64,000 bases of DNA from the IMG/VR virus record IMGVR_UViG_3300025319_000005, positions 124,001 through 188,000 of that record; one strand, given 5' to 3'. Under the pieces are notes generated by a model. It did not search any database. It was not told where the DNA came from and was given only the letters and a program-made list of their open reading frames with translations. The number at the start of each line of letters is the position of its first letter. Within the stretch, counting starts at the first letter, position 1. The position numbers and the translations under genes are program-made. Below, in pieces: positions 20 through 54,799 of the stretch.

Positions 20-778
20 ATGGACACAACAGATAGACAAATAAGTGTTAATAAATTTTTTAATGAGAATAGAGAACTAAAAGATTTTTTTAAAAAAATA
101 GGAGAAATAGATGCTTCTTTTGAGATAGAACATATATTAGTCTCAAAAGAAGAGGGGTTAAATCTTTTAAAAACAACAAAAAATAAAATCGCCTTAATTG
201 AAAGAAAAAATTTTAATTTTCTTAAGGATTTTTTCCTTGGAATTGGGGCTAAAAAAGAATTTATACAAGCAATATTAACAGATAAAGAATTTATAAAGCA
301 TTTATTTGAATACGGTTTATTCGATAATTTAATTGACTCTTATAAAGAAATGGATGTTCCCTTAGAAGGTCTTAATGTAATAAAATCATTACCATGGTTA
401 AATTCATGGATTATGAATAAAGACACTAAGCCTGAAAGAATTCAAGATTTTATATTTAGTATTTCAAAAAATTTAGGAAACGAAGGACAAGAGTTCGTTA
501 AACATTTACTAACAAAAGGAGGAATTATTTGGAATGCACTTCTTCAGCCTGGAAACATAAGAATAACACATTATTTTAATATGTTATCTTCAAGAAAATC
601 TCTTGGAACTTCCGGAATGATCATGTCAAAAAAATTATTAAGAAACCCAAGTGTTATAGCTGAATTATTATCAAAAGGGGTGTCTAAAACATCTATTGAA
701 ATGCTTAATAATTTTTACAATAGCGGAATAAAGGAATGTTATCAAGCACGTTTATATTTAAGAAACATACTTAGGTAA
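20..778 (+). CDS. hypothetical protein
   Basis: 252-aa ORF, no recognised motif. Confidence 0.6.
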   Translation: MDTTDRQISVNKFFNENRELKDFFKKIGEIDASFEIEHILVSKEEGLNLLKTTKNKIALIERKNFNFLKDFFLGIGAKKEFIQAILTDKEFIKHLFEYGLFDNLIDSYKEMDVPLEGLNVIKSLPWLNSWIMNKDTKPERIQDFIFSISKNLGNEGQEFVKHLLTKGGIIWNALLQPGNIRITHYFNMLSSRKSLGTSGMIMSKKLLRNPSVIAELLSKGVSKTSIEMLNNFYNSGIKECYQARLYLRNILR

Positions 779-1504: not shown

Positions 1505-2176
1505 ATGGAATTTGATGAATTGATAAGTAATATTGATTTACATTCTCCGTTCCATAAAATGCTGGAAAAAAATAAATTAACAATTACACAAAATGAATTA
1601 TTAAAATATGTTGATGATAATCATTTTACAATAATACATAAAAGAAGGCAAGAAGGAGTTAGTACTGCGTTATCAGTTTATATTTTGTGGTTATTAATTA
1701 ATAATCCGGGACATTCAATTGCTTTGATATTTTCTCAGACAGAAGAGAGGGAAAAATTCAGACAAATTATCAACATGAATTTAACTTTACTTGAAAAAAT
1801 ATTTAAACTTCATGGCTATGATATGGTTTTAACAGCTAAAAACCATAACATAAATGAAACTATATTTCCAAATGGTTCGCGTATTCATTATTGGTCAAAA
1901 AACAATAAACATGCCGGCAGGGGTCATAGTTTAGATTTTGTTTATATATCAGAAGTAACTCACCAAGATAATTACATGGAACTAATTCAATGCCTTTATC
2001 CATGCGTTGCAATGAGTAAAAAAGGTAGATTTCTAATCACTTCATCAACTATTAGGACACTAAAGGAAGACTTCTTTATGAATGGAGAAGGAATTTCCGA
2101 ATACTGGTGTAATGATTTTTTCGATGGTAAAAGATTTGTAATAGTAGAAAAATACGAATTCAATCATAAAGTGTGA
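1505..2176 (+). CDS. stand-alone terminase-large-subunit ATPase-like protein (degenerate) with RFVIVEKY tag
   Basis: KRRQEGVST resembles terminase Walker A; AGRGHSLDFVYISE resembles Walker B with D>S; no nuclease domain. Confidence 0.6.
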   Translation: MEFDELISNIDLHSPFHKMLEKNKLTITQNELLKYVDDNHFTIIHKRRQEGVSTALSVYILWLLINNPGHSIALIFSQTEEREKFRQIINMNLTLLEKIFKLHGYDMVLTAKNHNINETIFPNGSRIHYWSKNNKHAGRGHSLDFVYISEVTHQDNYMELIQCLYPCVAMSKKGRFLITSSTIRTLKEDFFMNGEGISEYWCNDFFDGKRFVIVEKYEFNHKV

Positions 2177-4405: not shown

Positions 4406-4630
4406 TTGGGACATTACATTGATAATTATTTAAAAGCACTTCCGCCTTTTTTAAAACAAAATCAAAACGATGAAAATGTTCTAACAAGGATTGTTATTGT
4501 TGAAAAATATAATATAAATCCTTGGATTTGCTCAGGCAATTTAATAGAAGATTTAAAAAAAGACATGGATTATTTTCGTGCTAAAATGTTTAACTGTGTT
4601 GGAATTCCCTCAAAATACTTCGAAATATAA
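4406..4630 (+). CDS. small protein with RIVIVEKY tag and portal-like C-terminal segment
   Basis: TTG start; DMDYFRAKMFNCVGIPSKYF resembles the T4-type portal DxxYFxxKLxxxLxIP segment. Confidence 0.5.
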   Translation: MGHYIDNYLKALPPFLKQNQNDENVLTRIVIVEKYNINPWICSGNLIEDLKKDMDYFRAKMFNCVGIPSKYFEI

Positions 4631-4659: not shown

Positions 4660-5298
4660 ATGTATTTATCTGAATCATATAAAAATCGTCTTAAATTGCT
4701 ATCTGGAGTTATTCTTGAAGATGGTTCTGATGCTGTGAAGCACACTCCTGGTCTTGACGAATTCTTAGAAAAAGTAGTCGAAAGATATAAAATTGACAAC
4801 ACATTTGTTGATATAATAAAACAATTTATTTTAAATTCTGATTGTAAAAAAATTTCAATTGAAAATCTTAAAATGGGTGATGCTGTTGCTATGTCTGATA
4901 GATTAATATTAAGTCCAAATGTTTTCAGAAATCATTTAGGTAGATTTTTATTCATATTATTTCATGAAACAGCTCATCAATATCAATTTAAAAAATATGG
5001 TGAGGATAAAATGCTTTCACTTTATACCGGCGACATTTCAATAAAAGAAGCTGCAGAACTTATGAAAAAAATAGAAGTTATCGCTGATGACTTTGCTGCA
5101 AGAAAAATTAGAGAATTAATTAAATTAAAATTTTTACATCCAAAGCATAGTGAATTCAAAGGATTTTACAAGGATGTTCCTATTGAAAAACTTTCACAAA
5201 CCATTATTCAAATAAAGGATATGTTAAAAAAACTAAACATAACCGAACCATCCAAAATTAGTGAAGTATTTTATAATTGGGTAAAGGCCGACTTATAA
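4660..5298 (+). CDS. HExxH metallopeptidase-like protein with shared N-terminal leader
   Basis: LFHETAHQYQ; leader MYLSESYKNRLKLLSGVILE; TATTTA at 4644-4649. Confidence 0.65.
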   Translation: MYLSESYKNRLKLLSGVILEDGSDAVKHTPGLDEFLEKVVERYKIDNTFVDIIKQFILNSDCKKISIENLKMGDAVAMSDRLILSPNVFRNHLGRFLFILFHETAHQYQFKKYGEDKMLSLYTGDISIKEAAELMKKIEVIADDFAARKIRELIKLKFLHPKHSEFKGFYKDVPIEKLSQTIIQIKDMLKKLNITEPSKISEVFYNWVKADL

Positions 5299-5338
5299 CT
5301 CTAATTATAACTTTTTTCAAGATATTTAATGATAAGTT

Positions 5339-7198
5339 ATGAACTTATCAGAATCGTACAAAAATCGCCTTAAATTATTGTCAGGAATTATTTCTGAGAA
5401 TGTTTCTAATATCCAAGAATTAGATATTGAAGACGTATCTATTCCGGCAAGCTACATAAAAGATTCCTTAAATCCACAAATATGGGATGGTGATAAGTTA
5501 AAACCAGAAATAAGAGAACATTTACTAAATATAGTTAATGGATACAAAAAGCATCTTGAATTAAAAATAGAACCTAAAGATGTTAAATTTTTGGGAAGTA
5601 TGGCTAATTTCAACTGGACAGATGCAAGTGATATTGATGTCCATTTATTTTATGACATAAAAAACATCTCTGATAATACAGAACTTACTAAGCAATTACT
5701 TGAAAGTAAAGGTAAAGATTGGAAAGATAATCACGATATAAAAATAAAAGGTTTCAATGTTGAATTATATGCTCAGGATATTAATGACCAATATCACTCT
5801 GGTGGTGTTTATGATTTACTTAATAACGACTGGATTAGTAAGCCAAAAAAAGAAGATGTTAAAGTTGACAAAGAATTAATAAAAAGAAAATCTTCTTCCA
5901 TTGCTACAAGAATAGAACATGTTGAAAAATTGTCTGATAATAATCCAGATAAAGTTTATAAAGAAGCAAAAAAATTAAAAGATAAAATCAAAAAAATGAG
6001 ACAAGCTGGTTTAGATAAAACTGGTGAATTTTCTGCTGAGAATTTAGTTTTTAAATACTTAAGAAACAATGGTTATCTTGATAGGTTAGGAAAAGTTATC
6101 TCAAAATCTTTTGATAAAAATCTATCACTGGATGAAACTAACATTACTGAAGCTAACCACGATATTGATCCAAGACATTTAAGGAAAGTTATTTTTAAAA
6201 GCAAACGCAGGCCAGAAATGATTATTGTCGTTAGTAAGACTTTAGATGGTAGAATTGTTGACATAGAAAATAAATTCAATATAAATTTCCCATTTAAAGT
6301 AGGACAGATTCTAAATAGAAACCATGAAACATGGGCTTGTAATAATCATTATTTTGTAAATGACAAAGATACTTGTCCGGAAGAAAAAGTATTTGGTATT
6401 AGAAAAAGTGATATTCCTCAAGGACATGAATTAAGAATGATGTTTCCGGGTAAATTTAAAAACGAATCAAAAATGGAATTAAATGAAGAAACCAATAAAC
6501 TTTCCTCGAAAGAATCACTTGAAATAAAAAGGGTAGCTAAAAAAGGAAATTTAAATATTGGAAGATATGATATCAACGAGCTTATTATGGGATTTCAAAT
6601 TGAAAAAGAACATGGTACAGTTAATCCAATAACAAATGTTACTAATGATGATGAAGTGAAAACCTTAAAAATTGCTTTAGCTCATCTTAATGAGGTACCG
6701 GACTATTATACAAAACTTAAAAAGTATGTAGAAAATGGGATTTCAGAATCAAAAAAAGTAAAAAAAAAATTAATGAATGAATCAACAGATTTTGAAGAAA
6801 AACAAAAGCATAAATTAATTATAAAAAAATCCGTTGACAATCTTGACGAAAACAAAATTAATCTTATTAAAAAGTTTATAATTTTTTGTTGTAAAGAATT
6901 AAAGATAGATAGTTCGTGCACTGTATTTTTAACAGGAAAAAGGGGTGGTCCAATTACTACTACTGCAAGTTATAATCCAGAAAATGACCATATTTGGATT
7001 TATACAAAAAACAGGAATATGCTGGCAGATCCAATGAGATCGATGGCGCACGAAATAAGACATTTTAAACAAAAATTAGATGGTGTTTTAACTGAAAAGT
7101 CAGGTGAGGATGGAAGCATTCATGAGAATGAAGCAAATTCTTTTAGTGGATGTATGATTAGAAAGTTTGGTAAAAACAATAGAGAAATTTATCAATAA
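5339..7198 (+). CDS. multi-module protein: leader + Pol-beta-type nucleotidyltransferase + unknown module + DUF5661-like + HExxH peptidase
   Basis: GSMANFNW..SDIDVH; MGFQIEKEH..IALAHLNEVPDYY; MAHEIRH; modules separated by LDE/ITE/LNE/ISE/MNE. Confidence 0.7.
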   Translation: MNLSESYKNRLKLLSGIISENVSNIQELDIEDVSIPASYIKDSLNPQIWDGDKLKPEIREHLLNIVNGYKKHLELKIEPKDVKFLGSMANFNWTDASDIDVHLFYDIKNISDNTELTKQLLESKGKDWKDNHDIKIKGFNVELYAQDINDQYHSGGVYDLLNNDWISKPKKEDVKVDKELIKRKSSSIATRIEHVEKLSDNNPDKVYKEAKKLKDKIKKMRQAGLDKTGEFSAENLVFKYLRNNGYLDRLGKVISKSFDKNLSLDETNITEANHDIDPRHLRKVIFKSKRRPEMIIVVSKTLDGRIVDIENKFNINFPFKVGQILNRNHETWACNNHYFVNDKDTCPEEKVFGIRKSDIPQGHELRMMFPGKFKNESKMELNEETNKLSSKESLEIKRVAKKGNLNIGRYDINELIMGFQIEKEHGTVNPITNVTNDDEVKTLKIALAHLNEVPDYYTKLKKYVENGISESKKVKKKLMNESTDFEEKQKHKLIIKKSVDNLDENKINLIKKFIIFCCKELKIDSSCTVFLTGKRGGPITTTASYNPENDHIWIYTKNRNMLADPMRSMAHEIRHFKQKLDGVLTEKSGEDGSIHENEANSFSGCMIRKFGKNNREIYQ

Positions 7199-17541: not shown

Positions 17542-17811
17542 TTAAGAATATTTACCTCTTCGATTTGCTCTCCTTGGCTTTCTTTCTAATTTTACTGGAG
17601 CTTCTTCTGTTTCCTCTATTTGTTCCGGTTCTGGTACCGGTTGTTTTGGAAGTGGCGTTTGGTCTTGTTTAATAACTTCTGGATTACCTATAGAAGGTGA
17701 TTGCGTTTGTTGAGGAACAGATTCTCCTCCTTGAGAAGATTGTTCATCTTCGTTGATAATTCCTGCCAATTCACGCATTCTTTTTAGCTCTTCTGTAAGA
17801 TTTTTTTTCAT
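17542..17811 (-). CDS. small protein with shared leader
   Basis: MKKNLTEELKRMRELAGIINE followed by a low-complexity Q/P/E tail. Confidence 0.65.
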   Translation of the reverse strand: MKKNLTEELKRMRELAGIINEDEQSSQGGESVPQQTQSPSIGNPEVIKQDQTPLPKQPVPEPEQIEETEEAPVKLERKPRRANRRGKYS

Positions 17812-17824: not shown

Positions 17825-18310
17825 TTATTTTCCTGGTTTTCCAGATTTTATCCACTCATCTCTAAGTTTCTCATTTTCTATTCTATTCCAAACTGATTTT
17901 TGAATTGCCTGAGATGCTTTTGTTCTAGAATTTGCAGATGCTTCATCTGGATAACGGACACGCCATTGATAAACAAGCTCCTTTGCTACTCCTAAACCTC
18001 TGTATTTCTTATCAACAACAAGAGTATTGCCAAAATGATAGCTGGCAATTATTTTATCACCATCATATACAACAGCACCATCTTCATTGAATTTCGCTGA
18101 ATATTTCCCTTTTAAAAATGGTTCTAATTTATCATCTTTTAATGTGGTAAGTTCACTTGGTTTTAAAAATTTCGCATTAGCGTTTGTTGTTATTGATGGT
18201 TTTCCTAAAAATTGGTCTTTTGTTAAATCATATACAGATGAAAACTTAGCTTCATTAATTCCTGCCAATTCACGCATTCTTTTAATTTCTTCTGTGAGAT
18301 TTTTTTTCAT
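17825..18310 (-). CDS. GNAT acetyltransferase-like protein with shared leader
   Basis: MKKNLTEEIKRMRELAGINE; VVDKKYRGLGVAKEL acetyl-CoA motif. Confidence 0.7.
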   Translation of the reverse strand: MKKNLTEEIKRMRELAGINEAKFSSVYDLTKDQFLGKPSITTNANAKFLKPSELTTLKDDKLEPFLKGKYSAKFNEDGAVVYDGDKIIASYHFGNTLVVDKKYRGLGVAKELVYQWRVRYPDEASANSRTKASQAIQKSVWNRIENEKLRDEWIKSGKPGK

Positions 18311-23356: not shown

Positions 23357-24871
23357 CTATAAAAATCCTTCGGTGGTAGCCCACCTATATTGTTCTGCAG
23401 TTAGGAAATTAGGAACTTTTTCTAAACCCTTTTTATTAGCTATCTTTGAAATGTAATAATTTTTCAAATCTTTTGAAAGCAAGTTAAAAAATCTATTAGG
23501 CATAAACGTATAAAAGTTATCTAAATATTTGTTTATGTAAAGTTTCTTTTCTCGTTCGTCAAGTTCGCTGAATTGTTCTGGTTCAATAAGATGAACTTTG
23601 TTTTTCAAGAGTCCTTTACGATAACGTTCTTTTTGTTCTGGCGTAGCCATTTCATATGCCCAAGAAGGTAGTTTTTTGCCAGAATTTGACATTTGTTCAA
23701 TGTAATAGGCCACTAACTTAGGGTCAGAGTCTAAAGCAACTGAATGAGGTAGTTCTCCACCTTTCTTTACTATATCTTTATAGTAGTAAACCTTTAGTCT
23801 GTTTTCTGCATTTTTAAAATAATAAGAAGGTAATGAGGTTGAGCTATATTTAGATAATTTTTTTTCTATAGCTTTTTGACGTTCCTCCGGTTCCATTAAC
23901 AATAAATATTTTTCAGCAATAGTCCATCCATTCTCAGCGAATATTTTTATTTGCAATTCTCTTAGTCCGGGTATTGTGTCAATTATTGTTTCTGGTATTT
24001 TTAATCCTTTTCTAATACGTTCTTCAAGTGCCGGCATAAATCTTTGAATAGCTTCTGGATTTCTTTCTGCAATAGCTCCAAGTAATGAAAGCGCAGTATC
24101 ACTTAAATCTTGACTTGTGGATAAATATTTTGCAATAGCTTCATTTAATGCATCAGCGATACTTGGATTATTTTTGAAAAATTCTCCGACATCTATCTGA
24201 CTATCATTCATGTTCATGAATTGATTCGACTCAAAATGAAACTGATATCTTCTTGTCGCATCATCTTGATTTAATTTCAATTTGTCTATAATGATGTATA
24301 ATGGACCGTCTTTTGTGTAATGTTCGTAATTATCAGGAAATCTCGTGCACCATTGACTAGTACATGCATAGAATTTCGAAGACTCGTAAGATTTAGGAAC
24401 AACAACCATCCATCTTCTGTTTTCGAAAAATAATTCTGCTTGACCGTTATTTATAAAAAATCTATCAGTTAAAAGATATGATTCATCATCTTTAACTTGA
24501 CCGGTTCCTCCAAATCTTGAATTAAGAATAAATAACTCTGGAAGTGAACTTATTTTACCAATATCCTTAGCATTTTCTGGAAGAATATTTTGTTTTTTAA
24601 GCTCATTATACATAATGAGATATTCCTTTGCTTTATATAAATCTTCTTTTCTTAATTTCCCTTTTTTGTGAAGAGAAAGTAACCACTTTGAATATTGTCC
24701 TAACTTATCTGGAATTCCTTTTTTTATAGGAGTTGTAGGGTCTGCTTTTATAATGTCGTAAAAAAAATCGAGACGAATATCTACATAGTACTTTTCGTAT
24801 ATGTCAGACACTTTTGACTCAGAGAGAATTCCAGCCAATTCCTGCAGTCTTTTTTTGAGTTTGTCGTCCAT
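23357..24871 (-). CDS. conserved phage protein with shared leader
   Basis: MDDKLKKRLQELAGILSE; SQWCT..GPLYIIIDK..YQFHFE segment. Confidence 0.6.
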   Translation of the reverse strand: MDDKLKKRLQELAGILSESKVSDIYEKYYVDIRLDFFYDIIKADPTTPIKKGIPDKLGQYSKWLLSLHKKGKLRKEDLYKAKEYLIMYNELKKQNILPENAKDIGKISSLPELFILNSRFGGTGQVKDDESYLLTDRFFINNGQAELFFENRRWMVVVPKSYESSKFYACTSQWCTRFPDNYEHYTKDGPLYIIIDKLKLNQDDATRRYQFHFESNQFMNMNDSQIDVGEFFKNNPSIADALNEAIAKYLSTSQDLSDTALSLLGAIAERNPEAIQRFMPALEERIRKGLKIPETIIDTIPGLRELQIKIFAENGWTIAEKYLLLMEPEERQKAIEKKLSKYSSTSLPSYYFKNAENRLKVYYYKDIVKKGGELPHSVALDSDPKLVAYYIEQMSNSGKKLPSWAYEMATPEQKERYRKGLLKNKVHLIEPEQFSELDEREKKLYINKYLDNFYTFMPNRFFNLLSKDLKNYYISKIANKKGLEKVPNFLTAEQYRWATTEGFL

Positions 24872-32108: not shown

Positions 32109-34619
32109 TTATCTTTTAATTCTTGTGTTGAGAGGATTCATCAAAGTTTTTGTGTCAACTCCATCCTCAGGGTTTCTTATTTTTTTTTTGGTTTGATTTG
32201 AACTTTCTTGTGATTTTAATTGCTGTCTTACCCAATTTCTTCCAGCATTTCCGCCCCAAAGATTCCATTTTTGAATTAAAGGTGAATTATTGATGTTTTT
32301 TCCAGCAGCAAGCTCTTGATTAACAGCCTGCTCATTGTTTGTAAAAAAAGCCTCCATTCTCTTTAATTGAGCATGCGTCATAAGCTCTGCATTAGATAAA
32401 GAATTGGCTTTTTGAATGCCGGAGCCTTCATTCGAGGCATCTGATTGAACAAGTTTATTATTTTGAACAGCTTGTAGTGCTTGTTGAGCCGTTTTAATAA
32501 CATCACCAGATGGTTTAAATGTAGCTACTGTATTATCATTAGTGTCTGAATAACGAAAATTTCCACCTTCAAATAGGATTTTCCTAATAGTTGCTCTTAC
32601 TTTTTCTTCAAATAAACTTTTCATAGTAACATAATGTGCTAAATTTTCAAATGGAATAAAACCTTCCTTAACTCCTTTTTTTGTAAGTAATCTAATTTTA
32701 AATTTTCTGTTATGTATATTAGTCTCTAAAACTTCTATAAAATCACCATCTGGCATTTTAACAGAATTTCTTTCGCCATTTTTACTTATAAATCCTAAAT
32801 TTCTCAATATACGTCCTGCTTCTTCTGAGTTTTGCACAACTTCTGGAGTTGTTTGAAGTTGTTCCAAATCTTCTTCTAATAACCTCTCTATTTCTTCTTG
32901 CATATAGGATAAATCTTTTGGTTTCGGCCATATATTTTGCCAAGCATCATCTAATCCATATCCATGTGCTCCTGTAATTTTATTTACATCAGAATCTTTT
33001 AAATCTTCAAAATCTTCAATAACATCATTTGAATTAAAGTTTTTTTCAGCAATGTATCTTAAAAGTTTTGTCCAAGGAAAAGTAATAACATCAGTATTAA
33101 AATCTATTTTAAATCTTTGTTCTTTCCTTATCATTTTATCCCTTACTTTTGCAAATTCATCTGATTTTTTTTCATAAATTTCAGATATATATATTCTTTT
33201 TATATCTTCTGAATTTGGAAGAAATTCATTAATAAAATCCCAAATGCCTTCACCGTTATTACTTTCTTCGTCTATTGGTGTTTTTAAAAAATTTGATATT
33301 GTTTTTAATAATTTTTCATTTTGTTTTCCGAGCATATGGTAAGACATTTGTTTTTCTTCTCTACTTTCCCCTTCTTCTACTGCATAATGATTTTCAACAT
33401 AATAAAATGCACTTTCATCCTCATCTGAAAAACCTGCCCAATCTCTCCAATCATCACCAATATAAAGTTGAATTTCTTTATTATTAGCTTCAAAATTAGA
33501 ATACATTTTTTTATCATTAAAATCACTGTATCCAAAAACGCTATGAGGCTCATCATAACCTCTCATTACTGCTATTATTTTCTGCATAAACATTGGTAAT
33601 GATTTTATCTCTGCAGATTTTATTTTATAACCATTTGCTAATTTTGCTATAGGAGATAAATTTTTTATTTCTTCATCAGTTAAAGGAATTTTGTGTTTTA
33701 ATTTTAAATCAGGAGACATTTCTTTTATCTCTTCATCAGTTAAAGGAATTTTGAATTTTAATTTAGATTCAACAGGAATAGACATTAATTGCTCTTGATT
33801 TATGTCGATACCTAATAAATATCTATTTAATGGTAATATTTTTATGTTAAACAATGAAGAAATAAGCTTTTTAAAATCGGGATACATTTTAATAGTTTGA
33901 TTAATAGTATTATTGTGACCAAAATCAATATTTAATATTTCGCCCAATTTAGATATTAAATCAGCAGATTTCATTGCTGAATTTTTATCTGGAACTTTAT
34001 TAAAAGCACCTTGAAAATCGATTAATTCTTTTTTTGCTTTATCAAATTGAATAGCAATTTTCACAGAACCATCTTTATTAACAAGCATATAACCACCTTT
34101 ACTTTTAACAAATTCTTTAGCTCTACCAATTTCAGAAAAACACCAACCCCTTTCTTCTCCCACTTTCATACAAAAGTTTTTATCTTTAACAATAATCCAT
34201 TTAGAACCATCTGGATAATTTATTACTGCTTTTCCTCCAGATATTTCTTTTAAAGTTAGAGGGTCTATATTTTTACTTTCAAACCACTTAACTGCAGTTT
34301 CGTAAACTTTATCAAATGGCATATTTGATGGAAATTTTGGAAAATTAGATTGATTAATCCAATTTATTATAACTTTTAATCTTGCATCGTTTATAATTTT
34401 TTCATTCAATTTTAATTCAGAAGCAAACCAAGGTATGTATTGGTTTTGTTGAATCAAATTTTCATCTTCAGGATTTTTTACTGTTTTTTTAGAAAACTGA
34501 ATAACGGTATTAATTATATCTTCAGGAACCCTTTGAGAACGAAGTTTATCTATTCTATTCTCATTAAGTAAACCTGCGAGTGACATTAATTTTGCTATAT
34601 ATTTTTCAGATAAATTCAT
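32109..34619 (-). CDS. large multi-module protein with leader and C-terminal head-morphogenesis-associated domain
   Basis: MNLSEKYIAKLMSLAGLLNE; internal LFEEKVRATIRKILFE; LKRMEAFF..WNLWGG.AG..W. Confidence 0.6.
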   Translation of the reverse strand: MNLSEKYIAKLMSLAGLLNENRIDKLRSQRVPEDIINTVIQFSKKTVKNPEDENLIQQNQYIPWFASELKLNEKIINDARLKVIINWINQSNFPKFPSNMPFDKVYETAVKWFESKNIDPLTLKEISGGKAVINYPDGSKWIIVKDKNFCMKVGEERGWCFSEIGRAKEFVKSKGGYMLVNKDGSVKIAIQFDKAKKELIDFQGAFNKVPDKNSAMKSADLISKLGEILNIDFGHNNTINQTIKMYPDFKKLISSLFNIKILPLNRYLLGIDINQEQLMSIPVESKLKFKIPLTDEEIKEMSPDLKLKHKIPLTDEEIKNLSPIAKLANGYKIKSAEIKSLPMFMQKIIAVMRGYDEPHSVFGYSDFNDKKMYSNFEANNKEIQLYIGDDWRDWAGFSDEDESAFYYVENHYAVEEGESREEKQMSYHMLGKQNEKLLKTISNFLKTPIDEESNNGEGIWDFINEFLPNSEDIKRIYISEIYEKKSDEFAKVRDKMIRKEQRFKIDFNTDVITFPWTKLLRYIAEKNFNSNDVIEDFEDLKDSDVNKITGAHGYGLDDAWQNIWPKPKDLSYMQEEIERLLEEDLEQLQTTPEVVQNSEEAGRILRNLGFISKNGERNSVKMPDGDFIEVLETNIHNRKFKIRLLTKKGVKEGFIPFENLAHYVTMKSLFEEKVRATIRKILFEGGNFRYSDTNDNTVATFKPSGDVIKTAQQALQAVQNNKLVQSDASNEGSGIQKANSLSNAELMTHAQLKRMEAFFTNNEQAVNQELAAGKNINNSPLIQKWNLWGGNAGRNWVRQQLKSQESSNQTKKKIRNPEDGVDTKTLMNPLNTRIKR
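33660..33770. repeat. 60-nt tandem repeat within CDS
   Basis: two copies encoding KLKxKIPLTDEEIK. Confidence 0.8.
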
Positions 34620-41536: not shown

Positions 41537-42028
41537 TTATTTAATCCATGGAAAATCTTTTCTGAACAATACTTTTGTTTTTTCATTTCTGTTTAAATCA
41601 CTTTCTGTTATTTCTTTAAAATATTCTTCGGCAGTTTTTTTAAGAAGGACTATTTTATGCGTATCTAAATCCTCTTTAATAAAAGCAGTACTTCTATTTC
41701 TTCTAAGTAATTCATATTGTTGATATATTGAATTAACTAAAACAGCCCAATTATTTTTAACTACTAAATCGAAATGCTTTAAAGCATGGCACGCTTCACA
41801 CAAAAGAATAAACTCTGCAGTATCATGTTCAGTTCCATTCCACCATTGTAAATGTGCTTGTAATGACTCTTTATCGCCATTAGTGTATCCACAACCAAGA
41901 CATGTATCTGAGCCGTTTTCAAAAACATCTTTTATAATTTCATTATATTTTTCTCTGCCTCCAGGTAGTGATTTTAAAAATTCCTTTTCAGAAGGAGAAA
42001 TTGACGGTATTAACTTAAAATGTTTCAT
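41537..42028 (-). CDS. HNH-like Zn-finger protein
   Basis: CLGCG...LLCEACHALKH. Confidence 0.6.
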   Translation of the reverse strand: MKHFKLIPSISPSEKEFLKSLPGGREKYNEIIKDVFENGSDTCLGCGYTNGDKESLQAHLQWWNGTEHDTAEFILLCEACHALKHFDLVVKNNWAVLVNSIYQQYELLRRNRSTAFIKEDLDTHKIVLLKKTAEEYFKEITESDLNRNEKTKVLFRKDFPWIK

Positions 42029-46527: not shown

Positions 46528-46769
46528 TATTCAATTTCTCCTGATTTATAAACCGTGAATGTTGTTGAAATATACTGTATCGGTTTTGTGACTTTAACAT
46601 TAATATACATTACGCCTTTATTTTTTTCTGGATATTTTTCAAATATTACAAATCTGGTGTTTTCATCATGATTAGCGAAATGCATTTCATCAATTTTGTA
46701 ATCACCCGTAGCTAATAGTTCAACAATTTTGCCAACAGAATTTAATGATTCATCATTATTTTTTTTCAT
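46524..46769 (-). CDS. small protein with RFVIFEKY tag and tail-sheath-like C-terminal segment
   Basis: YINVKVTKPIQYISTTFTVYKSG resembles the sheath C-terminal I.IKP....EFI.L.F.....G. Confidence 0.45.
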   Translation of the reverse strand: MKKNNDESLNSVGKIVELLATGDYKIDEMHFANHDENTRFVIFEKYPEKNKGVMYINVKVTKPIQYISTTFTVYKSGEIEY

Positions 46770-47017
46770 GATTTCATATTTTTAAACATTAAGCTTTCCA
46801 TTGAGACTTGAAATTCTGTTTCAAATACAGGACTAGCCACTAAATCATAAGAAAATAATGAAATATCTATTTCACTTGTATAAATTCCAGGACTTACAAA
46901 CATTTTAGGACTAGCCCACCAAATAGGAACGTTTCCATAACAATCAAATTTGGGAGTATAATAACGTCTACCAAAGTATTTTTCAATTATAACAAATCTT
47001 GTAAATATGTTTTCCAT
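46766..47017 (-). CDS. small protein with RFVIIEKY tag
   Basis: FSYDLVASP weakly resembles the gp21-type prohead protease D.V..PS segment. Confidence 0.45.
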   Translation of the reverse strand: MENIFTRFVIIEKYFGRRYYTPKFDCYGNVPIWWASPKMFVSPGIYTSEIDISLFSYDLVASPVFETEFQVSMESLMFKNMKS

Positions 47018-47023: not shown

Positions 47024-47842
47024 TTACAAATTTCTATTTCTACCATCAAATATCATCATCATCTCTGTAGAACCGCTTCTTACTGGGATAAAATAATCAT
47101 TTTCAAATACTATGCTATTTAAACTAGTTGAGCCTGATACATTATTGTTCCACCGATTAACTTTTGGTTTATATTTTTCAAAAAGAACAATTCTTGAATA
47201 AACATCTTCTCTTTCAAATGTGTAATCAAAATAATTTAACATTCCAGTAGATGCTGATAATGGTTGAACCGGGACGAGATCAAGAGCTATAGTTTGTGCA
47301 AAAACTTGCCTTATCATAGGAAATACTATTCCGTCAAAATTTGTTTCTTCCTTTTTTTTCTTGAATATTTTATTCCAGATAGAAACAAAAAATGATTTTA
47401 TTTTTAAGAATATCTTTTTCCACTTAGAGTCAAAACTTCTACTACTAACACCAATAATAGAAGATGAAAATTTACGTATTAAATCATTAGTTTCTTTTGT
47501 AGTTAATTTTCCAACCGGAACTGTATATGTTCTTTGTATCGGACTATTAACATCATTTATAAAACAAGATGCTTGATTTTCATATAATTGAACAATATTA
47601 CTTTTTTGATAACCGTGTAAACCATCAAGGAATCCTGAGTTTTTCCAATTTTTATAAATAATCTTTCTTTGATTTTCTAAATCTATGGATTTGTTGTGTT
47701 TTTCAAAGAGAACTTCTCTGGTTTCAGAACTGCTTTCTTCTTCTACTTTTTTGGTTTCATTTACGAGATTTGTCCAATTACTAATAACATTGAACACAGA
47801 ATTATCTCTTTCGGTTATTTTTATATCTAAAGGCATGTGCAA
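47024..47842 (-). CDS. truncated gp23-like major capsid protein paralog with RIVLFEKY tag
   Basis: WKNSGFLDGL..LYENQA and FPMIRQVFAQTIALDLVPVQPL..TGMLNYFDY match T4-like MCP N-terminal motifs; only 272 aa. Confidence 0.65.
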   Translation of the reverse strand: MHMPLDIKITERDNSVFNVISNWTNLVNETKKVEEESSSETREVLFEKHNKSIDLENQRKIIYKNWKNSGFLDGLHGYQKSNIVQLYENQASCFINDVNSPIQRTYTVPVGKLTTKETNDLIRKFSSSIIGVSSRSFDSKWKKIFLKIKSFFVSIWNKIFKKKKEETNFDGIVFPMIRQVFAQTIALDLVPVQPLSASTGMLNYFDYTFEREDVYSRIVLFEKYKPKVNRWNNNVSGSTSLNSIVFENDYFIPVRSGSTEMMMIFDGRNRNL

Positions 47843-47889: not shown

Positions 47890-48357
47890 TTAGTCACCTT
47901 TTGTAGAAATGTTTTTTTCTTGGTTTCTGGTAAGTTCGTTTTCTACACCTATAGATATGCTTCTAAAAGATTCTGGCGATTTTTCAATAATTTTTAAAAT
48001 ACTTTCAAAATCAAATCTTTGAGCCGAAAATTGTTTTGGCTTATTTAAACTTCCACCAACGTCAACTTTCCATACATACCATTTTGTATCTGGCTCTGTG
48101 TATATTACTTTGGATTTTTCCCAATTCTGAATAGCTTCTTCTCCTGTGTTTGAAACTGAATTTGATGGCCAGGAACTTGGGATATTAATACTTTTCTTAA
48201 TTTCGTAAACTTCTGGCTTATTGCTATAATGAACCAAATCAATTAATTTCAACAAAAAATAGTTCATTTCTTCAGTAGAATATTCTCCTGGTTTTGATGT
48301 GTTTTCAAAATATGATTCGAAAAGACACTTTCTTATTATTTTTCTAATTTGTTCCAT
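47890..48357 (-). CDS. protein with shared leader
   Basis: MEQIRKIIRKCLFE; TATTTA at 48364-48369. Confidence 0.6.
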   Translation of the reverse strand: MEQIRKIIRKCLFESYFENTSKPGEYSTEEMNYFLLKLIDLVHYSNKPEVYEIKKSINIPSSWPSNSVSNTGEEAIQNWEKSKVIYTEPDTKWYVWKVDVGGSLNKPKQFSAQRFDFESILKIIEKSPESFRSISIGVENELTRNQEKNISTKGD

Positions 48358-48394: not shown

Positions 48395-48850
48395 ATGAGA
48401 AACATCAGAAAAATGATAAGGAAAATCTTAATAGAGGAATCAAAACCCACGGTTGTTTATTCTGCTGTTGTTATTGAGAAACTTGAAGGTATTGGGAAGT
48501 TGGATTTGATTTTTAGTAAGTACATCGAAAACGGTTGGCAAAAACCGGTTCATTATCATATGACAATCGGACCGGGAAAATTTCCTGAGAGCTTGTATTT
48601 AAAAGGAGATTTAGATAAAGAAGTAACATTAGAAATAACGTCTGTAGGAATTTCAGAAAATGCTATAGCATTGGGAGTTTCAGGATATTATTCAAGAAAT
48701 GACAATCCACACATTACTATTGCTTTCAATAAAGAAAACGGAGGAAATCCGGAAGATAGCAAAGTGATTGAAAATTGGGGACATATTGATAATTTTTATG
48801 TGACTGGAATAATAAGAGAAGTTGGCGAAAATAATTTAGTTATTAAATAA
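48395..48850 (+). CDS. 2H phosphoesterase (cyclic phosphodiesterase-like) with shared leader
   Basis: two HxT motifs (YHMTI, PHITI); MRNIRKMIRKILIE. Confidence 0.75.
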   Translation: MRNIRKMIRKILIEESKPTVVYSAVVIEKLEGIGKLDLIFSKYIENGWQKPVHYHMTIGPGKFPESLYLKGDLDKEVTLEITSVGISENAIALGVSGYYSRNDNPHITIAFNKENGGNPEDSKVIENWGHIDNFYVTGIIREVGENNLVIK

Positions 48851-48934: not shown

Positions 48935-49621
48935 TTATATTAATTCATATCGTTTTGCCCACTTTCTCACCGCAACATCACTAACTCCAAATTTTCTACC
49001 AAGTGCACAATATGAATTATTTTCTATCATTTCTTTTAATTCTTCTTTAGAGGGTCTGTTTTTTACTTTTCTAAAATTTAATCTAGGTACATATTTTCTC
49101 GTTGTTTTTTTATTTGTTTTATTTTTTTTTGCATTTTTTCTGTCTACGCCAATTTTACCACGGCAATGAGTTTCTAATGTGAAATTGCAGTTTGGACATA
49201 AAAATCTTAAGTTTTCTAATCTATTATCATTATTTATTCCGTTTTCGTGGTCAATAATTAAACTAATTTTTTTACCTCTCCATATTTCTCCTTGTCCACA
49301 TTCTTTACATTCATATTCTATCATGTTATTATCTCGTATTCTTTTTTTTAAACAAGCCCTTGCAACAGAACTGTTTTCACAAAAAATTTCTTCATCACTT
49401 TTCCTTAATAATCTGTCTTCATTAAACATTTTTTTAGCAAAATCACTACGGTTTAAAAAATGAGAAGTATCTATTGACCATTTATTTAAATTTGTTTTAA
49501 GTATTTTATAAGATGAAGAAGAATCGCTTCTTCCAGATTTTACTATAACATCTCTAAATGTGATGCTTTCAGATACTAATTTTTGTAATTCTTCTTTTGT
49601 ATATTCTTTATGTTCTTTCAT
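48935..49621 (-). CDS. HNH homing endonuclease
   Basis: CKECG..IIDHENGINNDNRLENLRFLCPNC; C-terminal HTH. Confidence 0.9.
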   Translation of the reverse strand: MKEHKEYTKEELQKLVSESITFRDVIVKSGRSDSSSSYKILKTNLNKWSIDTSHFLNRSDFAKKMFNEDRLLRKSDEEIFCENSSVARACLKKRIRDNNMIEYECKECGQGEIWRGKKISLIIDHENGINNDNRLENLRFLCPNCNFTLETHCRGKIGVDRKNAKKNKTNKKTTRKYVPRLNFRKVKNRPSKEELKEMIENNSYCALGRKFGVSDVAVRKWAKRYELI

Positions 49622-49678
49622 AATTCTAACTTATTTTAATGTAAATAGGTTAGAATTTTTTAATAAAGTAAATAGTTG

Positions 49679-49754
49679 AGGATAAGAAGAGAATTAAACT
49701 CCTGTTAAATATGTTTTGCAGACATATCCCGATTTCAACATTGGGTACTTATCC
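49679..49754 (-). tRNA. tRNA-Cys(GCA)
   Basis: GGATAAG/CTTATCC, CT-GCA-AA, U73, T loop TTTAATT. Confidence 0.8.
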
Positions 49755-49768
49755 TTGTAAAAATTAAA

Positions 49769-50038
49769 AAAGTAAAATCCTAAGTATAGCCGCGATTTTG
49801 TTCTATCTCATCATTTATCTGAAGGTATTGCTACCAACTGGAGACTTTAAACGTCTACCACGCACCTACCCGACTATCAACAACGTAAAGGTTCCCCGTC
49901 TACAGTCTGTTTGGCTTGCATCCTATGTTGCGGAAGTACATACGCTATTTGTTATAGCTTCTTCCTCCTTTTAAAAGATGTCGCGAACTTCCTCTCGATT
50001 TTAAGAATCGAGCGATGAGTCCTTCAGGATTTTACTTT
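49769..50038 (-). ncRNA. rnpB: RNase P RNA, compact A-type-like with reduced specificity domain
   Basis: P1 AAAGTAAAATCCT/AGGATTTTACTTT; CR-I GAGGAAGTTCGCGAC; GCAAGCCAAA; GGGTAGGTGC; AGATAAATGAT; CR-V ACAAAATCGCGGCTATA; P4 with bulged U. Confidence 0.88.
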
Positions 50039-50043
50039 TCTTG

Positions 50044-50115
50044 AGGCTCCACTGACAATCGATGTCAGGACTCAAATTTACAAGATTCGTGTTTTGCCAC
50101 TTAAACTACGGAGCC
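50044..50115 (-). tRNA. tRNA-Thr(TGT)
   Basis: 72-nt cloverleaf, CT-TGT-AA, T loop ATCGATT. Confidence 0.85.
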
Positions 50116-50131
50116 ATTATTTGTTCTTATG

Positions 50132-50205
50132 TGGAATCTACCGGCATTGAACCGGTCTCTCAGGCGTGCAAGGCAAGTGTTCTAAGCCAAATGAACTAAG
50201 ACCCC
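50132..50205 (-). tRNA. tRNA-Ala(TGC)
   Basis: G3:U70, CT-TGC-AC; anticodon stem has two mismatches. Confidence 0.85.
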
Positions 50206-50243
50206 AATTTAATTTGTTCAAAGTACAAATTATTAAAAACTTT

Positions 50244-50319
50244 TGGCGAGTATGACCGGTCCTGACCCGGCGACCTCCTCATAGACAGTGAGGCATTCTT
50301 CCAACTGAACTACACACTC
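50244..50319 (-). tRNA. tRNA-Asp(GTC)
   Basis: cloverleaf, CT-GTC-TA, G73, encoded CCA, T loop GTCAGGA. Confidence 0.9.
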
Positions 50320-50332
50320 ATTATTTTTTAAA

Positions 50333-50639
50333 AAAGTAAGACGCCATTTCGCTGATAGCGTTTTTTGTGTTCTGTTTAATGCGCCAAAGAACATCTGATT
50401 ATGTTCAGCATTTAGCGTTCATGCTTGGTTATTATAACATACTAACATTCCTAATATTGTCTGATTACCTATTTTGAGTTTGCATAGTAGGTTGATTTTT
50501 ATTTCCAGGGTAAAAATCAACAAACAAACCTAACGTCTGATAAACTTTATTTTTCATCCGGTAAACGTTTTGTACATTGTTTAGTTCATTAGGCTAAAAC
50601 AACACGTCTTTTTCACGGACAACATTAGTAACTTACTTT
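50333..50639 (-). ncRNA. unidentified ~307-nt structured RNA
   Basis: closing stem AAAGTAAG/CTTACTTT, perfect 11-bp hairpin GTTGATTTTTA/TAAAAATCAAC and further hairpins; no long ORF; lies between tRNAs; strand inferred from the operon. Confidence 0.65.
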
Positions 50640-50644
50640 TCTTG

Positions 50645-50718
50645 TAGTGCATCTGAGAATTGAACTCAGTACTTCCACGTTATCGGCGTGGCACTCTGGA
50701 CCGATGAGTTAATGCACT
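50645..50718 (-). tRNA. tRNA-Ile(GAT)
   Basis: cloverleaf, CC-GAT-AA (C33). Confidence 0.88.
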
Positions 50719-50732
50719 GTTTTTATTTAAAG

Positions 50733-50805
50733 TCTAGGTGGCCTGCTCCGACCAGGCGGTCTCCAGTTCCCAAAACTGGCGGATTTCCAACTTTCCCACA
50801 CCTAG
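50733..50805 (-). tRNA. tRNA-Pro(TGG)
   Basis: C1:G72, TT-TGG-GA, T loop GTCGGAG. Confidence 0.87.
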
Positions 50806-50842
50806 AAATTTTGTTTATCTTTCCAAACTGTCTTTTAATAAG

Positions 50843-50906
50843 AGTTCAAGCTCGGTTATCCACCGATTCGAAGGACTGCATTAGCCTTCTCTGCAGACAC
50901 TTGAAC
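50843..50906 (-). ncRNA. 64-nt tRNA-sized element lacking D and anticodon arms
   Basis: acceptor-like GTTCAAG/CTTGAAC, T-like hairpin TCGG-TGGATAA-CCGA, alternative central stems. Confidence 0.5.
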
Positions 50907-50908
50907 AT

Positions 50909-50984
50909 TGGAGCGAAAAACCAGGTTCAAACTGGCGACCCCCAGAGTGGAAATCTGGCGCTCTATCAACTGAGCTATTTTCGC
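50909..50984 (-). tRNA. tRNA-Gly(TCC)
   Basis: cloverleaf, TT-TCC-AC, U73, CCA. Confidence 0.9.
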
Positions 50985-51073
50985 TTATGTATATAATTCT
51001 CTCAGACCATATTACCAAGATTTACTTTGGACTCACCGTATTTTAAAAGTGAGCAGAATTGTATTTAATTAAA

Positions 51074-52021
51074 TTATTCTAATAATAATTCATCAATTGT
51101 TAAAATTGAATTTAAATTATCTATTGTTTTTTTAAATATCATTTTAACATTAATGTTGTTTTGTTCTAATACTAAACTCATTTTTGTTTTATCTATTATT
51201 GAATAATATCCTTTAGTTTCTATGTATAAGTTAAAATTTGGCAAATAAAAATCTGGCACATACGTTTTTTCAACACCTTCTTTAATATATTGAATATATA
51301 TTTTTCTAATCCACAATATTTTATTGTCATTTAACCATTGCGACATTTTTAATTCATATTTTCCTCTTAAAGAATATTCTTCACCAATAATATTTTTTTG
51401 TTTATAAAATTTCACATGTTTAAAATTGTTACTTATTTCATTTTCTTCTAACATCTTGGAGTGAGATTTGCTAATTTTCGATTTTTGTTCAGAAGAAAGT
51501 GGCTTTCCTAATTGGTGATGTATTCTCTTACCAGTAGCATACATTTCTTTTTGTTGCTCAGATGCTTTATTTACCCTATTATCAGTTTCCTTTGTAAGTC
51601 CTCTTGACCATCCCATTTTTGATTTAGTCTCTGCATTACTGTATTTTTTATTTTTATATTCAACTCCATCCGGTGTATGCATTTGAAATATATGACCACA
51701 TATACCAAGTTTGTGAAATATTAATTCGCAATGAGGACATTTATATTTATCTACATCAACTTTCCAAGATTCATCTACTGTTATTTGTTTTTTATTAACT
51801 GTATTACATTTATTATAATGCCTTTCAAAATTAGAAACAGAAATATTTTTATTACATTTATCACAACATTTTGTGTTTTTAGGTTTTCCAAGTAAAGAAA
51901 TACTTAAATTTTTTAATCTTTCTTTTAACTTTGGATTAGATTCACAATTTACTATATGAGCACCAAATTGTTGTGGGATCTCAAACTCAAAAGACTCTTT
52001 GCAATGCGGACAAGTTTTCAT
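51074..52021 (-). CDS. homing endonuclease-like protein (Zn fingers + PD-(D/E)xK)
   Basis: CPHC and CDKC fingers; YVPDFYLP..LYIETKGY. Confidence 0.8.
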   Translation of the reverse strand: MKTCPHCKESFEFEIPQQFGAHIVNCESNPKLKERLKNLSISLLGKPKNTKCCDKCNKNISVSNFERHYNKCNTVNKKQITVDESWKVDVDKYKCPHCELIFHKLGICGHIFQMHTPDGVEYKNKKYSNAETKSKMGWSRGLTKETDNRVNKASEQQKEMYATGKRIHHQLGKPLSSEQKSKISKSHSKMLEENEISNNFKHVKFYKQKNIIGEEYSLRGKYELKMSQWLNDNKILWIRKIYIQYIKEGVEKTYVPDFYLPNFNLYIETKGYYSIIDKTKMSLVLEQNNINVKMIFKKTIDNLNSILTIDELLLE

Positions 52022-52090
52022 ACTTTTTTATTATAAATAGTATAAAAAATTGCAGGTTAGAAAATTGTTAGCACGTTATTGTTTTTTGAG

Positions 52091-52173
52091 TGGGAGTTGA
52101 TGGAGACGAGCCACCCGAGTTTTAAAACAACCGATTTACAGTCGGTCCCGCTACCCCTACGGAATAAACTCCC
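52091..52173 (-). tRNA. tRNA-Tyr(GTA)
   Basis: CT-GTA-AA, long variable arm, T loop CTCGTCT. Confidence 0.87.
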
Positions 52174-52185
52174 ATTTTAATGTTG

Positions 52186-52257
52186 CACAGACGGTTATAA
52201 TCGAAATAACTACGTGTAGTTTTTGGAGAACTCACCGACACCAAGCCTGTCGTCTGT
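52186..52257 (-). tRNA. tRNA-Trp(CCA)
   Basis: CT-CCA-AA, G73, canonical T arm; weak D arm. Confidence 0.75.
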
Positions 52258-52296
52258 ATTTTATCTATTTTTTAAGCTGTAAGATAATTAGCTAAG

Positions 52297-52368
52297 TAGC
52301 GAAAACTGGAATCGAACCAATGTAGACACAGCTTATGAGACTGGTGGGAAACCAACATCCTTTTCGCA
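52297..52368 (-). tRNA. tRNA-Met(CAT), initiator-like
   Basis: 1:72 mismatch, CT-CAT-AA; weak D arm. Confidence 0.75.
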
Positions 52369-52381
52369 ATATATTTTTTTG

Positions 52382-52454
52382 TAGCCCCTGCCGGTCCTGA
52401 CCCGACGACTTCATTCATGTAAAAAATGCACTCTACCAACTGAGTTAAGGGGCT
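52382..52454 (-). tRNA. tRNA-Val(TAC)
   Basis: cloverleaf, TT-TAC-AT, T loop GTCAGGA. Confidence 0.88.
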
Positions 52455-52459
52455 ATTAG

Positions 52460-52533
52460 TAGCATATATCAGAATCAAACTGATGACCTTCCTCATATGA
52501 AAAGGACGCTCTAATCAACTGAGCTAATATGCT
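52460..52533 (-). tRNA. tRNA(CAT): elongator Met or Ile2
   Basis: cloverleaf, TT-CAT-AT; identity not resolvable from sequence. Confidence 0.85.
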
Positions 52534-52543
52534 ATTTAAAAAG

Positions 52544-52615
52544 AGCGGGTGATGAGGATTAAACTCACGGCCTCATCCTTGGCAAGGATGCGCTCTATCG
52601 CTGAGCTACACCCGC
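52544..52615 (-). tRNA. tRNA-Gly(GCC)
   Basis: cloverleaf, TT-GCC-AA, U73. Confidence 0.92.
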
Positions 52616-52691
52616 TTTTTTGATTATCAATATGTCAAATAACTCTGCAAACTTTTAAGTCATTGCTCGACTTGTAAACTTTTTAAGCAAC

Positions 52692-52727
52692 AAAAAACCC
52701 GAACCTTTTTTAAGTCCGGGTGTGTTA
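52692..52727 (-). terminator. attenuator terminator of tRNA operon 1
   Basis: ACCCGGAC/GTTCGGGT + U6; 5' arm overlaps the antiterminator partner TAACACACCC. Confidence 0.85.
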
Positions 52728-52760
52728 TGTTGTTTCCCTTTTAAGTTTTTATATCTTACT

Positions 52761-52889: not shown

Positions 52890-52916
52890 TGAAGATGTTT
52901 TCTTTTTAATTAAACT

Positions 52917-53002
52917 TAAATAGTATAAAAAATTATTTTCTCAAATATTTCTTTCGACCAATTATAACGCAAAGATATAATTAAAGTTTAATAAAAAGCA
53001 AA
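52917..53002 (-). promoter_or_regulatory. tandem promoters of tRNA operon 1
   Basis: TTTG-N21-TATCTTTG (52970-53002) and TATTTA (52917-52922). Confidence 0.75.
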
Positions 53003-54795: not shown

Positions 54796-54799
54796 AAGC

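Follow-up and report, generated by a model that had tools for sequence, protein, structure and literature searches.

The closest described counterparts of the protein reported here are the polyvalent proteins, multi-domain proteins of phages and plasmids centred on a zincin-like metallopeptidase (MPTase) domain. They are predicted to be delivered together with DNA and released by proteolysis, and the MPTase is proposed as their processing enzyme, with the processing of P1 DdrB cited as a case (Iyer, Burroughs, Anand, de Souza, Aravind, 2017, PMC5512222). Another counterpart is found in phage T4, where the protease gp21 cuts after L/I-x-E, a capsid-targeting sequence (CTS) of 10 residues is sufficient for head packaging, and this CTS is the sole feature conserved among the diverse internal proteins (PMC9026906, PMC3012670). 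In giant phages, too, the head proteases cleave behind Glu, taking off leaders of 20-24 residues (PMC10052503). Here, we describe a 619-amino-acid (aa) protein encoded in a 64,000-nucleotide stretch (the window) of virus record IMGVR_UViG_3300025319_000005, which corresponds to bases 124001-188000 of the 212,632-bp IMG/VR record, estimated to be 81% complete. The record (~29% G+C) carries a terminase fragment, a gp23-like capsid-protein fragment, 16 tRNA genes, methyltransferases and thymidylate synthase, because of which we recognize its source as a large uncultured tailed phage with T4-like head genes.

The 619-aa protein is specified by a single ATG-to-stop open reading frame (ORF) on the plus strand (window 5339..7198), within which the antisense ORFs reach merely 52-71 aa. 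We found that it consists of a 20-aa leader followed by four modules, i.e., a nucleotidyltransferase (NT, residues 28-262), a module designated M2 (278-375), DUF5661 (D3, 390-465) and a zincin (Z4, 490-619), which are connected by three disordered linkers. We are confident that it is a modular polyvalent protein. The initial annotation of this gene, made from the sequence alone, had read it as a precursor of four unrelated modules joined by protease-type linkers, to be packaged and cut by the prohead protease. The motifs on which it relied are all present, the frame is uninterrupted, the catalytic residues are invariant in 16 relatives (alignment A1), and the quoted boundary clusters are located at residues 262-271, 374-384 and 468-482.

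The division into four independent modules with real boundaries is supported both by the structure models and by natural gene ends. AlphaFold2 run on alignment A1 gave well-modelled blocks at residues ~40-262, 280-375, 390-465 and 490-619. In this full-length model, the predicted local distance difference test score (pLDDT) fell below 50 at residues 1-27, 262-277, 377-389 and 462-489, and the predicted template modelling score (pTM) was only 0.37. A second model, comprising residues 270-619 and based on 37 sequences, reached a pLDDT of 80 and a pTM of 0.41 with the same linkers disordered. No packing of the domains into one fold was seen at these pTM values; as modelled, the four modules fold independently, with no confident inter-domain packing. 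The natural ends of the modules agree with the predicted boundaries: the solo NTase of Maribacter phage Colly_1 ends at linker 1, C-terminal copies of M2 end at ..KF[KR], immediately ahead of linker 2, and stand-alone Z4 zincins begin immediately past linker 3. The annotation had also proposed to look for the modules as separate genes in relatives, and such genes were found for all four.

NT (window 5420..6124, plus strand) comprises a Pol-beta-superfamily nucleotidyltransferase core and a C-terminal helical domain. Residues G86 S87, D98-x-D100 and E142, which form the Pol-beta NTase triad, are invariant in the 16 relatives. The module matches PHROG 36119, a family of 247 aa (E 7e-48, residues 40-264), while its Pfam Polbeta match is sub-threshold (16.6 vs 26.9 bits, residues 53-127). 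Weak matches include Pfam MTPAP-like, the folds of AAD(9), ANT(4'), CdnE (CD-NTase), LinB and DrrA and, for the NT of a relative, Pfam SidM_N. As a solo gene of ~230-280 aa, NT occurs in Synechococcus, Maribacter, Lak and other phages. In relatives P0079-P0112, it is found without leader or zincin, joined to M23 peptidase, amidase, VanY, glucosaminidase or peptidoglycan-binding domains, or placed after MORN repeats; these arrangements hint at a role of the NT family at cell entry.

Z4 (window 6806..7195, plus strand) is a minimal gluzincin-type metallopeptidase with an HEIRH motif and a Glu on the next helix. Since H571, E572, H575, E596 and E598 of Z4 are likewise invariant in the 16 relatives, both catalytic centres look intact. 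Z4 is known by fold only, as no Pfam peptidase or PolyVal model matched the 619-aa protein at E values up to 1. Its VIA matches at Z 8-10.5 are YbeY/AQ_1354, the cores of M1 aminopeptidases and lugdulysin, followed by Wss1 (Z 7.8-7.9; Foldseek probability 1.0), Spartan (Z 7.6-7.9) and the ArdC protease domain (Z 5.9). In the ESM Atlas, copies of Z4 form stand-alone viral proteins of 142-145 aa (TM 0.83-0.84) or are fused to superoxide dismutase (SOD), NT5C or cytidylyltransferase.

M2 (window 6170..6463, plus strand) is a conserved alpha/beta module to which our matches assign no function. It is modelled at a pLDDT of ~90 and carries the signature ..FPF.VGQ..W[AS]CNN..D.CPE.K..G..P.GH..R..P.KF, and its copies are 50-60% identical across very different proteins. 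It exists alone at 107-110 aa and inside giants with ART-PolyVal, RadC, GNAT or DUF4314 domains, those with Pfam PF18760 (ART-PolyVal) being proteins of 2,838 aa and 1,386 aa. D3 (window 6506..6733, plus strand) is a four-helix module matched by PF18905 (DUF5661) at residues 397-462 with E 2.4e-16; its score of 60.3 bits (63.9 bits when the genome was searched) exceeds the cut-off of 27. With a profile of 24 sequences, neither M2 nor DUF5661 found a sequence match in the PDB, and M2 had no Pfam match; in the fold searches (PDB Foldseek, VIA-wide, ESM Atlas) neither was matched, the top structures all being aligned to the zincin. A literature search for DUF5661 retrieved no papers. Residues 328-469 weakly match PHROG 80, annotated as 'head maturation protease', and when PHROG 80 was used to look for a prohead protease, its sole match was the DUF5661 region of the 619-aa protein. 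In the cultured Vibrio phage VPs20, DUF5661 (E 1.2e-18) immediately follows DUF2213 (E 1.4e-34) in a single protein, whose gene sits in a head-gene cluster between the terminase gene and a DUF2184 gene. We take the latter to encode a capsid protein and assume that the DUF2213 protein is a member of the PHROG 80 family. This arrangement would place DUF5661 in a head-interior protein, by association only.

The module architectures, mapped by BLAST among 115 homologues, show that the full NT-M2-D3-Z4 set is present in 17 proteins. Other architectures include NT-D3-Z4, NT-M2-Z4, NT-Z4, X-D3-...-Z4 and NT-D3, as well as NT and Z4 separated by 200-530 residues of other content, including ParB-like domains. 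Where Z4 is missing, NT is joined to peptidoglycan hydrolases, MORN repeats, GNAT, deaminase or NUDIX domains. A profile of M2-D3-Z4 matched 5,906 clusters among 1.84 billion representatives, in which M2, D3 and Z4 each exist alone or take the first, a middle or the last place in proteins as long as 2,838 aa. Thus, the modules evolve as cassettes that are dropped, swapped or kept solo in relatives. The association of M2 with ART-PolyVal, RadC, GNAT and DUF4314, together with Z4 as a hub, places the 619-aa protein among the polyvalent proteins, a kind already known, and the ParB-containing relatives share NT and Z4 with it. The same architecture is found, without interruption, in at least 15 orthologues (57-72% identity) that come from independent samples, one of them at a syntenic locus on a 518-kb contig. 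A search of IMG/VR for close full-length orthologues returned matches to the NT module only.

Some relatives (P0004, P0005, P0009, P0024, P0047, P0048, P0053, P0060 and P0063) bear an extra cassette, [NY]-P-W-[ALM]-x-[CFI]..S[STV]G, in the linker between DUF5661 and the zincin, the longer forms of which continue into a K-C-V stretch; it is absent from the 619-aa protein. On a 2.2-kb Logan contig (L060:1010-1040), an orthologue is divided into two called genes where a run of T is one base shorter. We considered this case (P0025) as a natural gene fission at linker 1 and rejected it, since the split stems from a one-base frameshift in the T-run at the end of NT on a short contig and probably reflects a sequencing or assembly error.

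The leader (residues 1-20, window 5339..5398, plus strand) is a predicted amphipathic helix (residues 5-17) followed by L-S-G-I and I-S-E. It proved to be a real element that is common to other genes of the same genome: the pattern recurs at the N-termini of eight other ORFs, of 836, 521, 504, 250, 212, 161, 112 and 89 aa. A regular expression for the leader core gave 11 matches in the genome, compared with a mean of 0.175 and a maximum of 2 in 200 shuffles of the proteins, and 9 of the 11 lie within the first 30 residues (0.06 expected). Each of the nine N-terminal leaders is followed by [LIVM]-x-E, usually L/I-x-E, ending at residue 18-25, and E20 is nearly invariant among the orthologues. 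The paralogous leaders vary at synonymous sites; therefore, selection acts on the leader peptide. The same core, R-M-R-[RK]-L-[AS]-G-[LI], was also noted at the extreme C-terminus of two ORFs (L006 and L007; record 193689-194273 and 196982-197395, both minus strand), one of which ends right after L-K-E, so the motif can occupy either end of a protein.

Among the leader-bearing genes, the 212-aa one lies directly upstream of the 619-aa gene (window 4660..5298, plus strand) and continues after the leader into a different HExxH (HETAH) zincin-like domain; aligned with the Z4 profile by hhalign, it covers the whole core at E 0.0076 and low probability. In the 518-kb relative, the slot of the 212-aa gene holds different genes, which indicates that the locus is plastic. 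The 836-aa (window 32109..34619, minus strand) and 504-aa (window 23357..24871, minus strand) proteins belong to no Pfam or PHROG family, and ESM Atlas feature searches with both gave weak leads only. The 161-aa gene (window 17825..18310, minus strand), with a weak GNAT hint, adjoins the 89-aa gene (window 17542..17811, minus strand), whose product had four unnamed matches in a homology search. The 521-aa gene (record 123213-124778) starts 787 nt before the window, and its 3' part occupies window 20..778 (plus strand).

A second leader type, I-K-K-L-L-R-E, again ending in L-x-E, was detected in one NT relative and in several solo Z4 proteins; the leader types are interchangeable, in that the same NT and Z4 cargo families bear this second type or none in other phages. 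In the complete 288-kb phage L020, which encodes an S77 protease, this leader heads a 962-aa NT fusion and is repeated at the internal junction before NT. The distant proteins in which NT is fused to peptidoglycan hydrolases lack a leader. As a separate observation, a third N-terminal motif, I-R-K-x-[IL]-R-K-x-L-x-E, occurs in about six genes of the record, including window 47890..48357 (minus), 48395..48850 (plus), 56038..57411 (plus) and 57419..58432 (plus) and record 5924-6901. Motifs of this type stand at the start of solo zincins and of an NT fusion in other phages, and the type is internal too in the 962-aa fusion of L020. A larger N-terminal family comprises 24 ORFs (77-246 aa) that share ..[LI]-T-R-[KR]-V-[LI]-x-E-K-[FYS], with an [LI]-x-E end, and are located at record 1.8-4.3 kb, 25.9-38.7 kb, 44 kb and 170.8 kb (window 46766..47017) and at window 4406..4630 (plus strand). 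The gp23-like capsid fragment (window 47024..47842, minus strand) has this motif, as ETREVLFEK, in its N-terminal extension; the motif is also present in a gp23-like 130-aa ORF adjoining the orthologue in the 518-kb relative (L010:9565-9957).

Each of the three linkers contains candidate cut sites. Linker 1 (residues 263-277, window 6125..6169, plus strand; pLDDT below 50) carries L-D-E, with an invariant E266, and I-T-E (E271). Linker 2 (residues 376-389, window 6464..6505, plus strand; pLDDT below 50) has K-N-E (E376) and L-N-E (E383), and in orthologues it may be as short as 3 or as long as 31 residues, yet E376 is invariant. Linker 3 (residues 466-489, window 6734..6805, plus strand; pLDDT 23-35) has I-S-E (E470) and M-N-E (E481; L-N-E in most orthologues), both of them kept by 14 of the 15 orthologues. 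Overall, [LIMV]-x-E is kept in at least 12 of the 15 closest relatives at six sites (E20, E27, E266, E452, E470 and E481), five of which fall in the disordered 15% of the residues (binomial probability ~4e-4). A matrix derived from the eight other leader sites ranked E470, E271, E376 and E481 among its top nine in the 619-aa protein; these are the four of its next eight top matches that lie within or directly beside linkers. The matrix also ranks sites of the folded domains (E586, E596, E122 and E209); therefore, its signal is modest. The junction motifs persist across unrelated architectures: NT is followed by D-K-x-L-S-[ILMV]-x-E, and Z4 is preceded by [FL]-x-L-N-E-[SN]. E266 was also considered as a junction-specific site, and this was abandoned since the solo NTases keep it too.

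How these elements could work together may be outlined as follows. The leader would act like the T4 capsid-targeting sequence and, perhaps aided by DUF5661, bring the precursor into the assembling head. A head-maturation protease cutting after hydrophobic-x-Glu would then remove the leader and probably cut the linkers. Finally, the pieces would enter the host with the DNA, where NT and the other modules may act on separate host targets early in infection. We hold this sequence of events, i.e., a leader-targeted precursor that is packaged, cut by a protease and delivered in pieces with the DNA, only tentatively, judging it to fall slightly short of an even case. Its parts differ in strength: whether the 619-aa protein is packaged in the head appears evenly poised, and cutting of the linkers by a prohead protease is rather doubtful. 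In favour of the outline we count the independence and cassette-like evolution of the modules, the membership in the polyvalent network, the leader with its interchangeable types, the cleavage-type sites in disordered segments and, as links to the head, the gp23-like capsid protein and the VPs20 fusion of DUF5661. What we regard as new is the leader common to nine genes with an end of the T4 prohead-protease type, the clustering of conserved [LIMV]-x-E in disordered segments and the VPs20 fusion of DUF5661.

Several observations weigh against this outline. The neighbours of the 619-aa gene are genes of nucleotide metabolism and methyltransferases, none of them head genes, and for the leader-bearing proteins the Pfam and PHROG scans returned nothing informative and no known virion role. 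The gp21/S77 protease was not found in the 81%-complete 212-kb record with the Pfam hidden Markov model (HMM) PF03420, with phmmer using the proteases of S-CRM01, Colly_1 and G001 as queries, or with a three-sequence HMM on six-frame fragments, although the S77 HMM detects the protease in S-CRM01, in Colly_1 and in the complete 288-kb phage with the NT fusion. In the AT-rich proteome, [LI]-x-E is common (1.65% of positions), and it rises to 2.4% at residues 10-29, partly owing to paralogue families. Moreover, S/T-[LI]-x-E also ends most stand-alone NTases, being followed there by a tail of 2-13 residues, so that it belongs, at least in part, to the NT domain itself. The reading in the initial annotation is supported in part: the linkers carry conserved hydrophobic-x-Glu sites of the type cut by T4-like prohead proteases, while the site after NT may be no junction signal.

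Among the alternatives, the one that survives best holds that the protein is never cut: its modules would stay tethered and act together in the cytoplasm, or be packaged whole, with the Glu sites being domain caps or a matter of linker composition and the leader having another role, e.g., partner binding or expression control. The occurrence of S/T-[LI]-x-E at the NT-family C-terminus even in solo genes fits this, as does the failure to find a gp21-type protease in the incomplete record; it also fits that two ORFs carry the leader motif at their very C-terminus, so that a cut there would set nothing free. The retention of NT and Z4 as bookends across many architectures could mean functional coupling. 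Yet, the models give no confident packing between the domains, the modules are lost or swapped freely while their neighbours remain unchanged, each is viable as a solo gene, and a conserved hydrophobic P3 in otherwise variable disordered linkers would be unusual for plain spacers. On balance, an uncleaved protein is possible, if somewhat unlikely.

Self-processing is a real rival, if an unlikely one in our view. In this case, Z4 or the neighbouring leader-bearing zincin would cut the linkers in cis or in trans, within the head or after injection, leaving to the prohead protease no more than the removal of the leader. The HExxH+E centre of Z4 is intact and invariant in relatives, its zincin fold is matched at Z 8-10, NT is joined to it more often than to any other partner, many enzymes are fused to it as a hub, and the adjacent 212-aa gene combines the leader with a second zincin-like domain. 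Yet, many NT fusions without a zincin keep the same junction motif, and the leaders of genes that lack a zincin likewise end in [LI]-x-E, suggesting that one enzyme acts on all of them in trans. Glu at P1 matches the specificity of gp21-type serine proteases, whereas zincins usually select on the P1' side. The account of MPTase-bearing polyvalent proteins speaks on both sides, as it proposes such a processing role with reference to P1 DdrB and reports that N4 vRNAP and ArdC bear such domains yet are transferred uncut (PMC5512222). The idea that a mistake in assembly or sequencing joined separate genes, for which the frameshift of contig L060 in the T-run at the NT end might be invoked, is hardly credible against the at least 15 independent orthologues that are uninterrupted.

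Returning to the reading of a packaged and cut precursor, its broadest form would be that a clade of large T4-related phages uses interchangeable leader families (L-[SA]-G-I and I-K-K-L-L-R-E) as capsid-targeting signals for a varied arsenal. Some of the cargo, like the 619-aa gene product, would be a true polyprotein cut at the L/I-x-E sites of the prohead protease, yielding four effectors per packaging signal, and DUF5661 would be a docking module of the head interior shared with maturation proteases. Taken as a whole, this proposal is unlikely and we put it forward with marked reserve.

As for the gene context, the motif ATTTAAT[AG]ATAA (window 5324..5335, plus strand) ends 4 nt ahead of the ATG of the 619-aa gene. 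It has six copies in the 212-kb genome and is found 15-16 nt before the starts of three leader-bearing genes (521, 212 and 619 aa), so that it may represent a promoter or a translation-start element. No Shine-Dalgarno sequence is visible upstream of the 619-aa gene start, and a scan for promoter and terminator consensus sequences gave counts no higher than in shuffled sequence. The 16 tRNA genes, including three for tRNA-Lys and two for tRNA-Gly, form a cluster at window 49678..61089 (minus strand). A 223-aa ORF (window 1505..2176, plus strand) covers solely the middle of the terminase large-subunit profiles (PHROG 5989 and PHROG 2), for which reason the terminase gene appears to be split into pieces. 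The gp23-like capsid protein was recognized by PF07068 (26.1 bits, cut-off 24.4) at window 47132..47341 (minus strand) and by PHROG 138 'major head protein'. Its gene (window 47024..47842) holds an N-terminal fragment only, which passes into a lysine-rich stretch unlike capsid sequence. HNH endonuclease genes lie close to it (window 48935..49621 and 41537..42028, both minus strand), and together with the fragmentary state of the gene they suggest that the capsid gene is interrupted, perhaps by an intron or homing element.

Polyvalent proteins have been defined computationally, and for their packaging and processing this locus provides a concrete and testable case. Its candidate cut sites can be named by residue, the head protease and the zincin of the protein itself compete as the cutting enzyme, and there are natural variants in which single modules are present or absent. 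Should the leader be a packaging signal, sequence alone would suffice to flag the arsenal that an entire clade of uncultured large phages injects, DUF5661 and the widespread M2 would gain their first functional context, and capsid targeting as in T4, by which foreign proteins are already loaded into heads, would be extended to other phages.

In comparison with known systems, the likeness to viral polyproteins drawn in the initial annotation is loose; the closer kinds are the phage polyvalent proteins and the CTS-bearing cargo of T4. With the polyproteins of RNA viruses, the 619-aa protein shares a single translation product that may give rise to several mature proteins via short linker motifs. 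In contrast to them, its modules are accessory cargo rather than a replication or structural set, ordinary genes are known for each of them, and the proposed protease is a capsid-maturation enzyme. Z4 resembles the domains of ArdC, P1 DdrB, Wss1 and Spartan in its zincin core of ~130 residues, in the HExxH motif with a downstream Glu and in its fold matches, and it shares with the MPTase domains of the ArdC and P1 DdrB type the C-terminal placement in a protein that is, or here would be, delivered. However, it has no sequence-level membership with ArdC, Wss1 or Spartan, ArdC is transferred uncut, and Wss1 and Spartan are DNA-dependent proteases of DNA-protein crosslinks.

The ejection and inner-body proteins of the giant phages phiKZ, 201phi2-1 and SPN3US are cut after the Glu of a three-residue motif by gp175/gp245, and head proteins of this type carry short (20-24 residues) or long propeptides and may be cut several times per protein (PMC10052503). 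P3 of the phiKZ-type motif is A, S or G, whereas here it is hydrophobic, as in T4, and there is no sequence similarity. The likeness to the internal proteins IPI-III and Alt of T4 lies in a short N-terminal leader, ending in L/I-x-E, on unrelated proteins of one phage, in the diversity of the cargo, which includes a host-modifying enzyme (Alt), and in the gp23-like capsid protein. In contrast to the 10-residue CTS of T4, the leader described here has ~20 residues, with L-[SA]-G-I at its core; its cargo takes the form of a four-module precursor, known from genes alone, that has candidate inter-module sites, and a gp21 homologue was not found in the 81%-complete record.

With regard to the polyvalent proteins, as far as the available portion of their description extends, the short shared leader and the Glu-P1 linker sites are not described among their features, and the NTase assigned to them is a minimal NTox45-like one reported only from conjugative elements, while NT belongs to a larger two-domain family (PMC5512222). 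In other respects, that account agrees closely with the 619-aa protein: unrelated enzymatic modules are combined in one phage polypeptide around a zincin hub, solo versions of the modules exist, modules are held in common with the giants bearing ART-PolyVal, RadC, GNAT and ParB domains, and early delivery with proteolytic release is predicted (PMC5512222).

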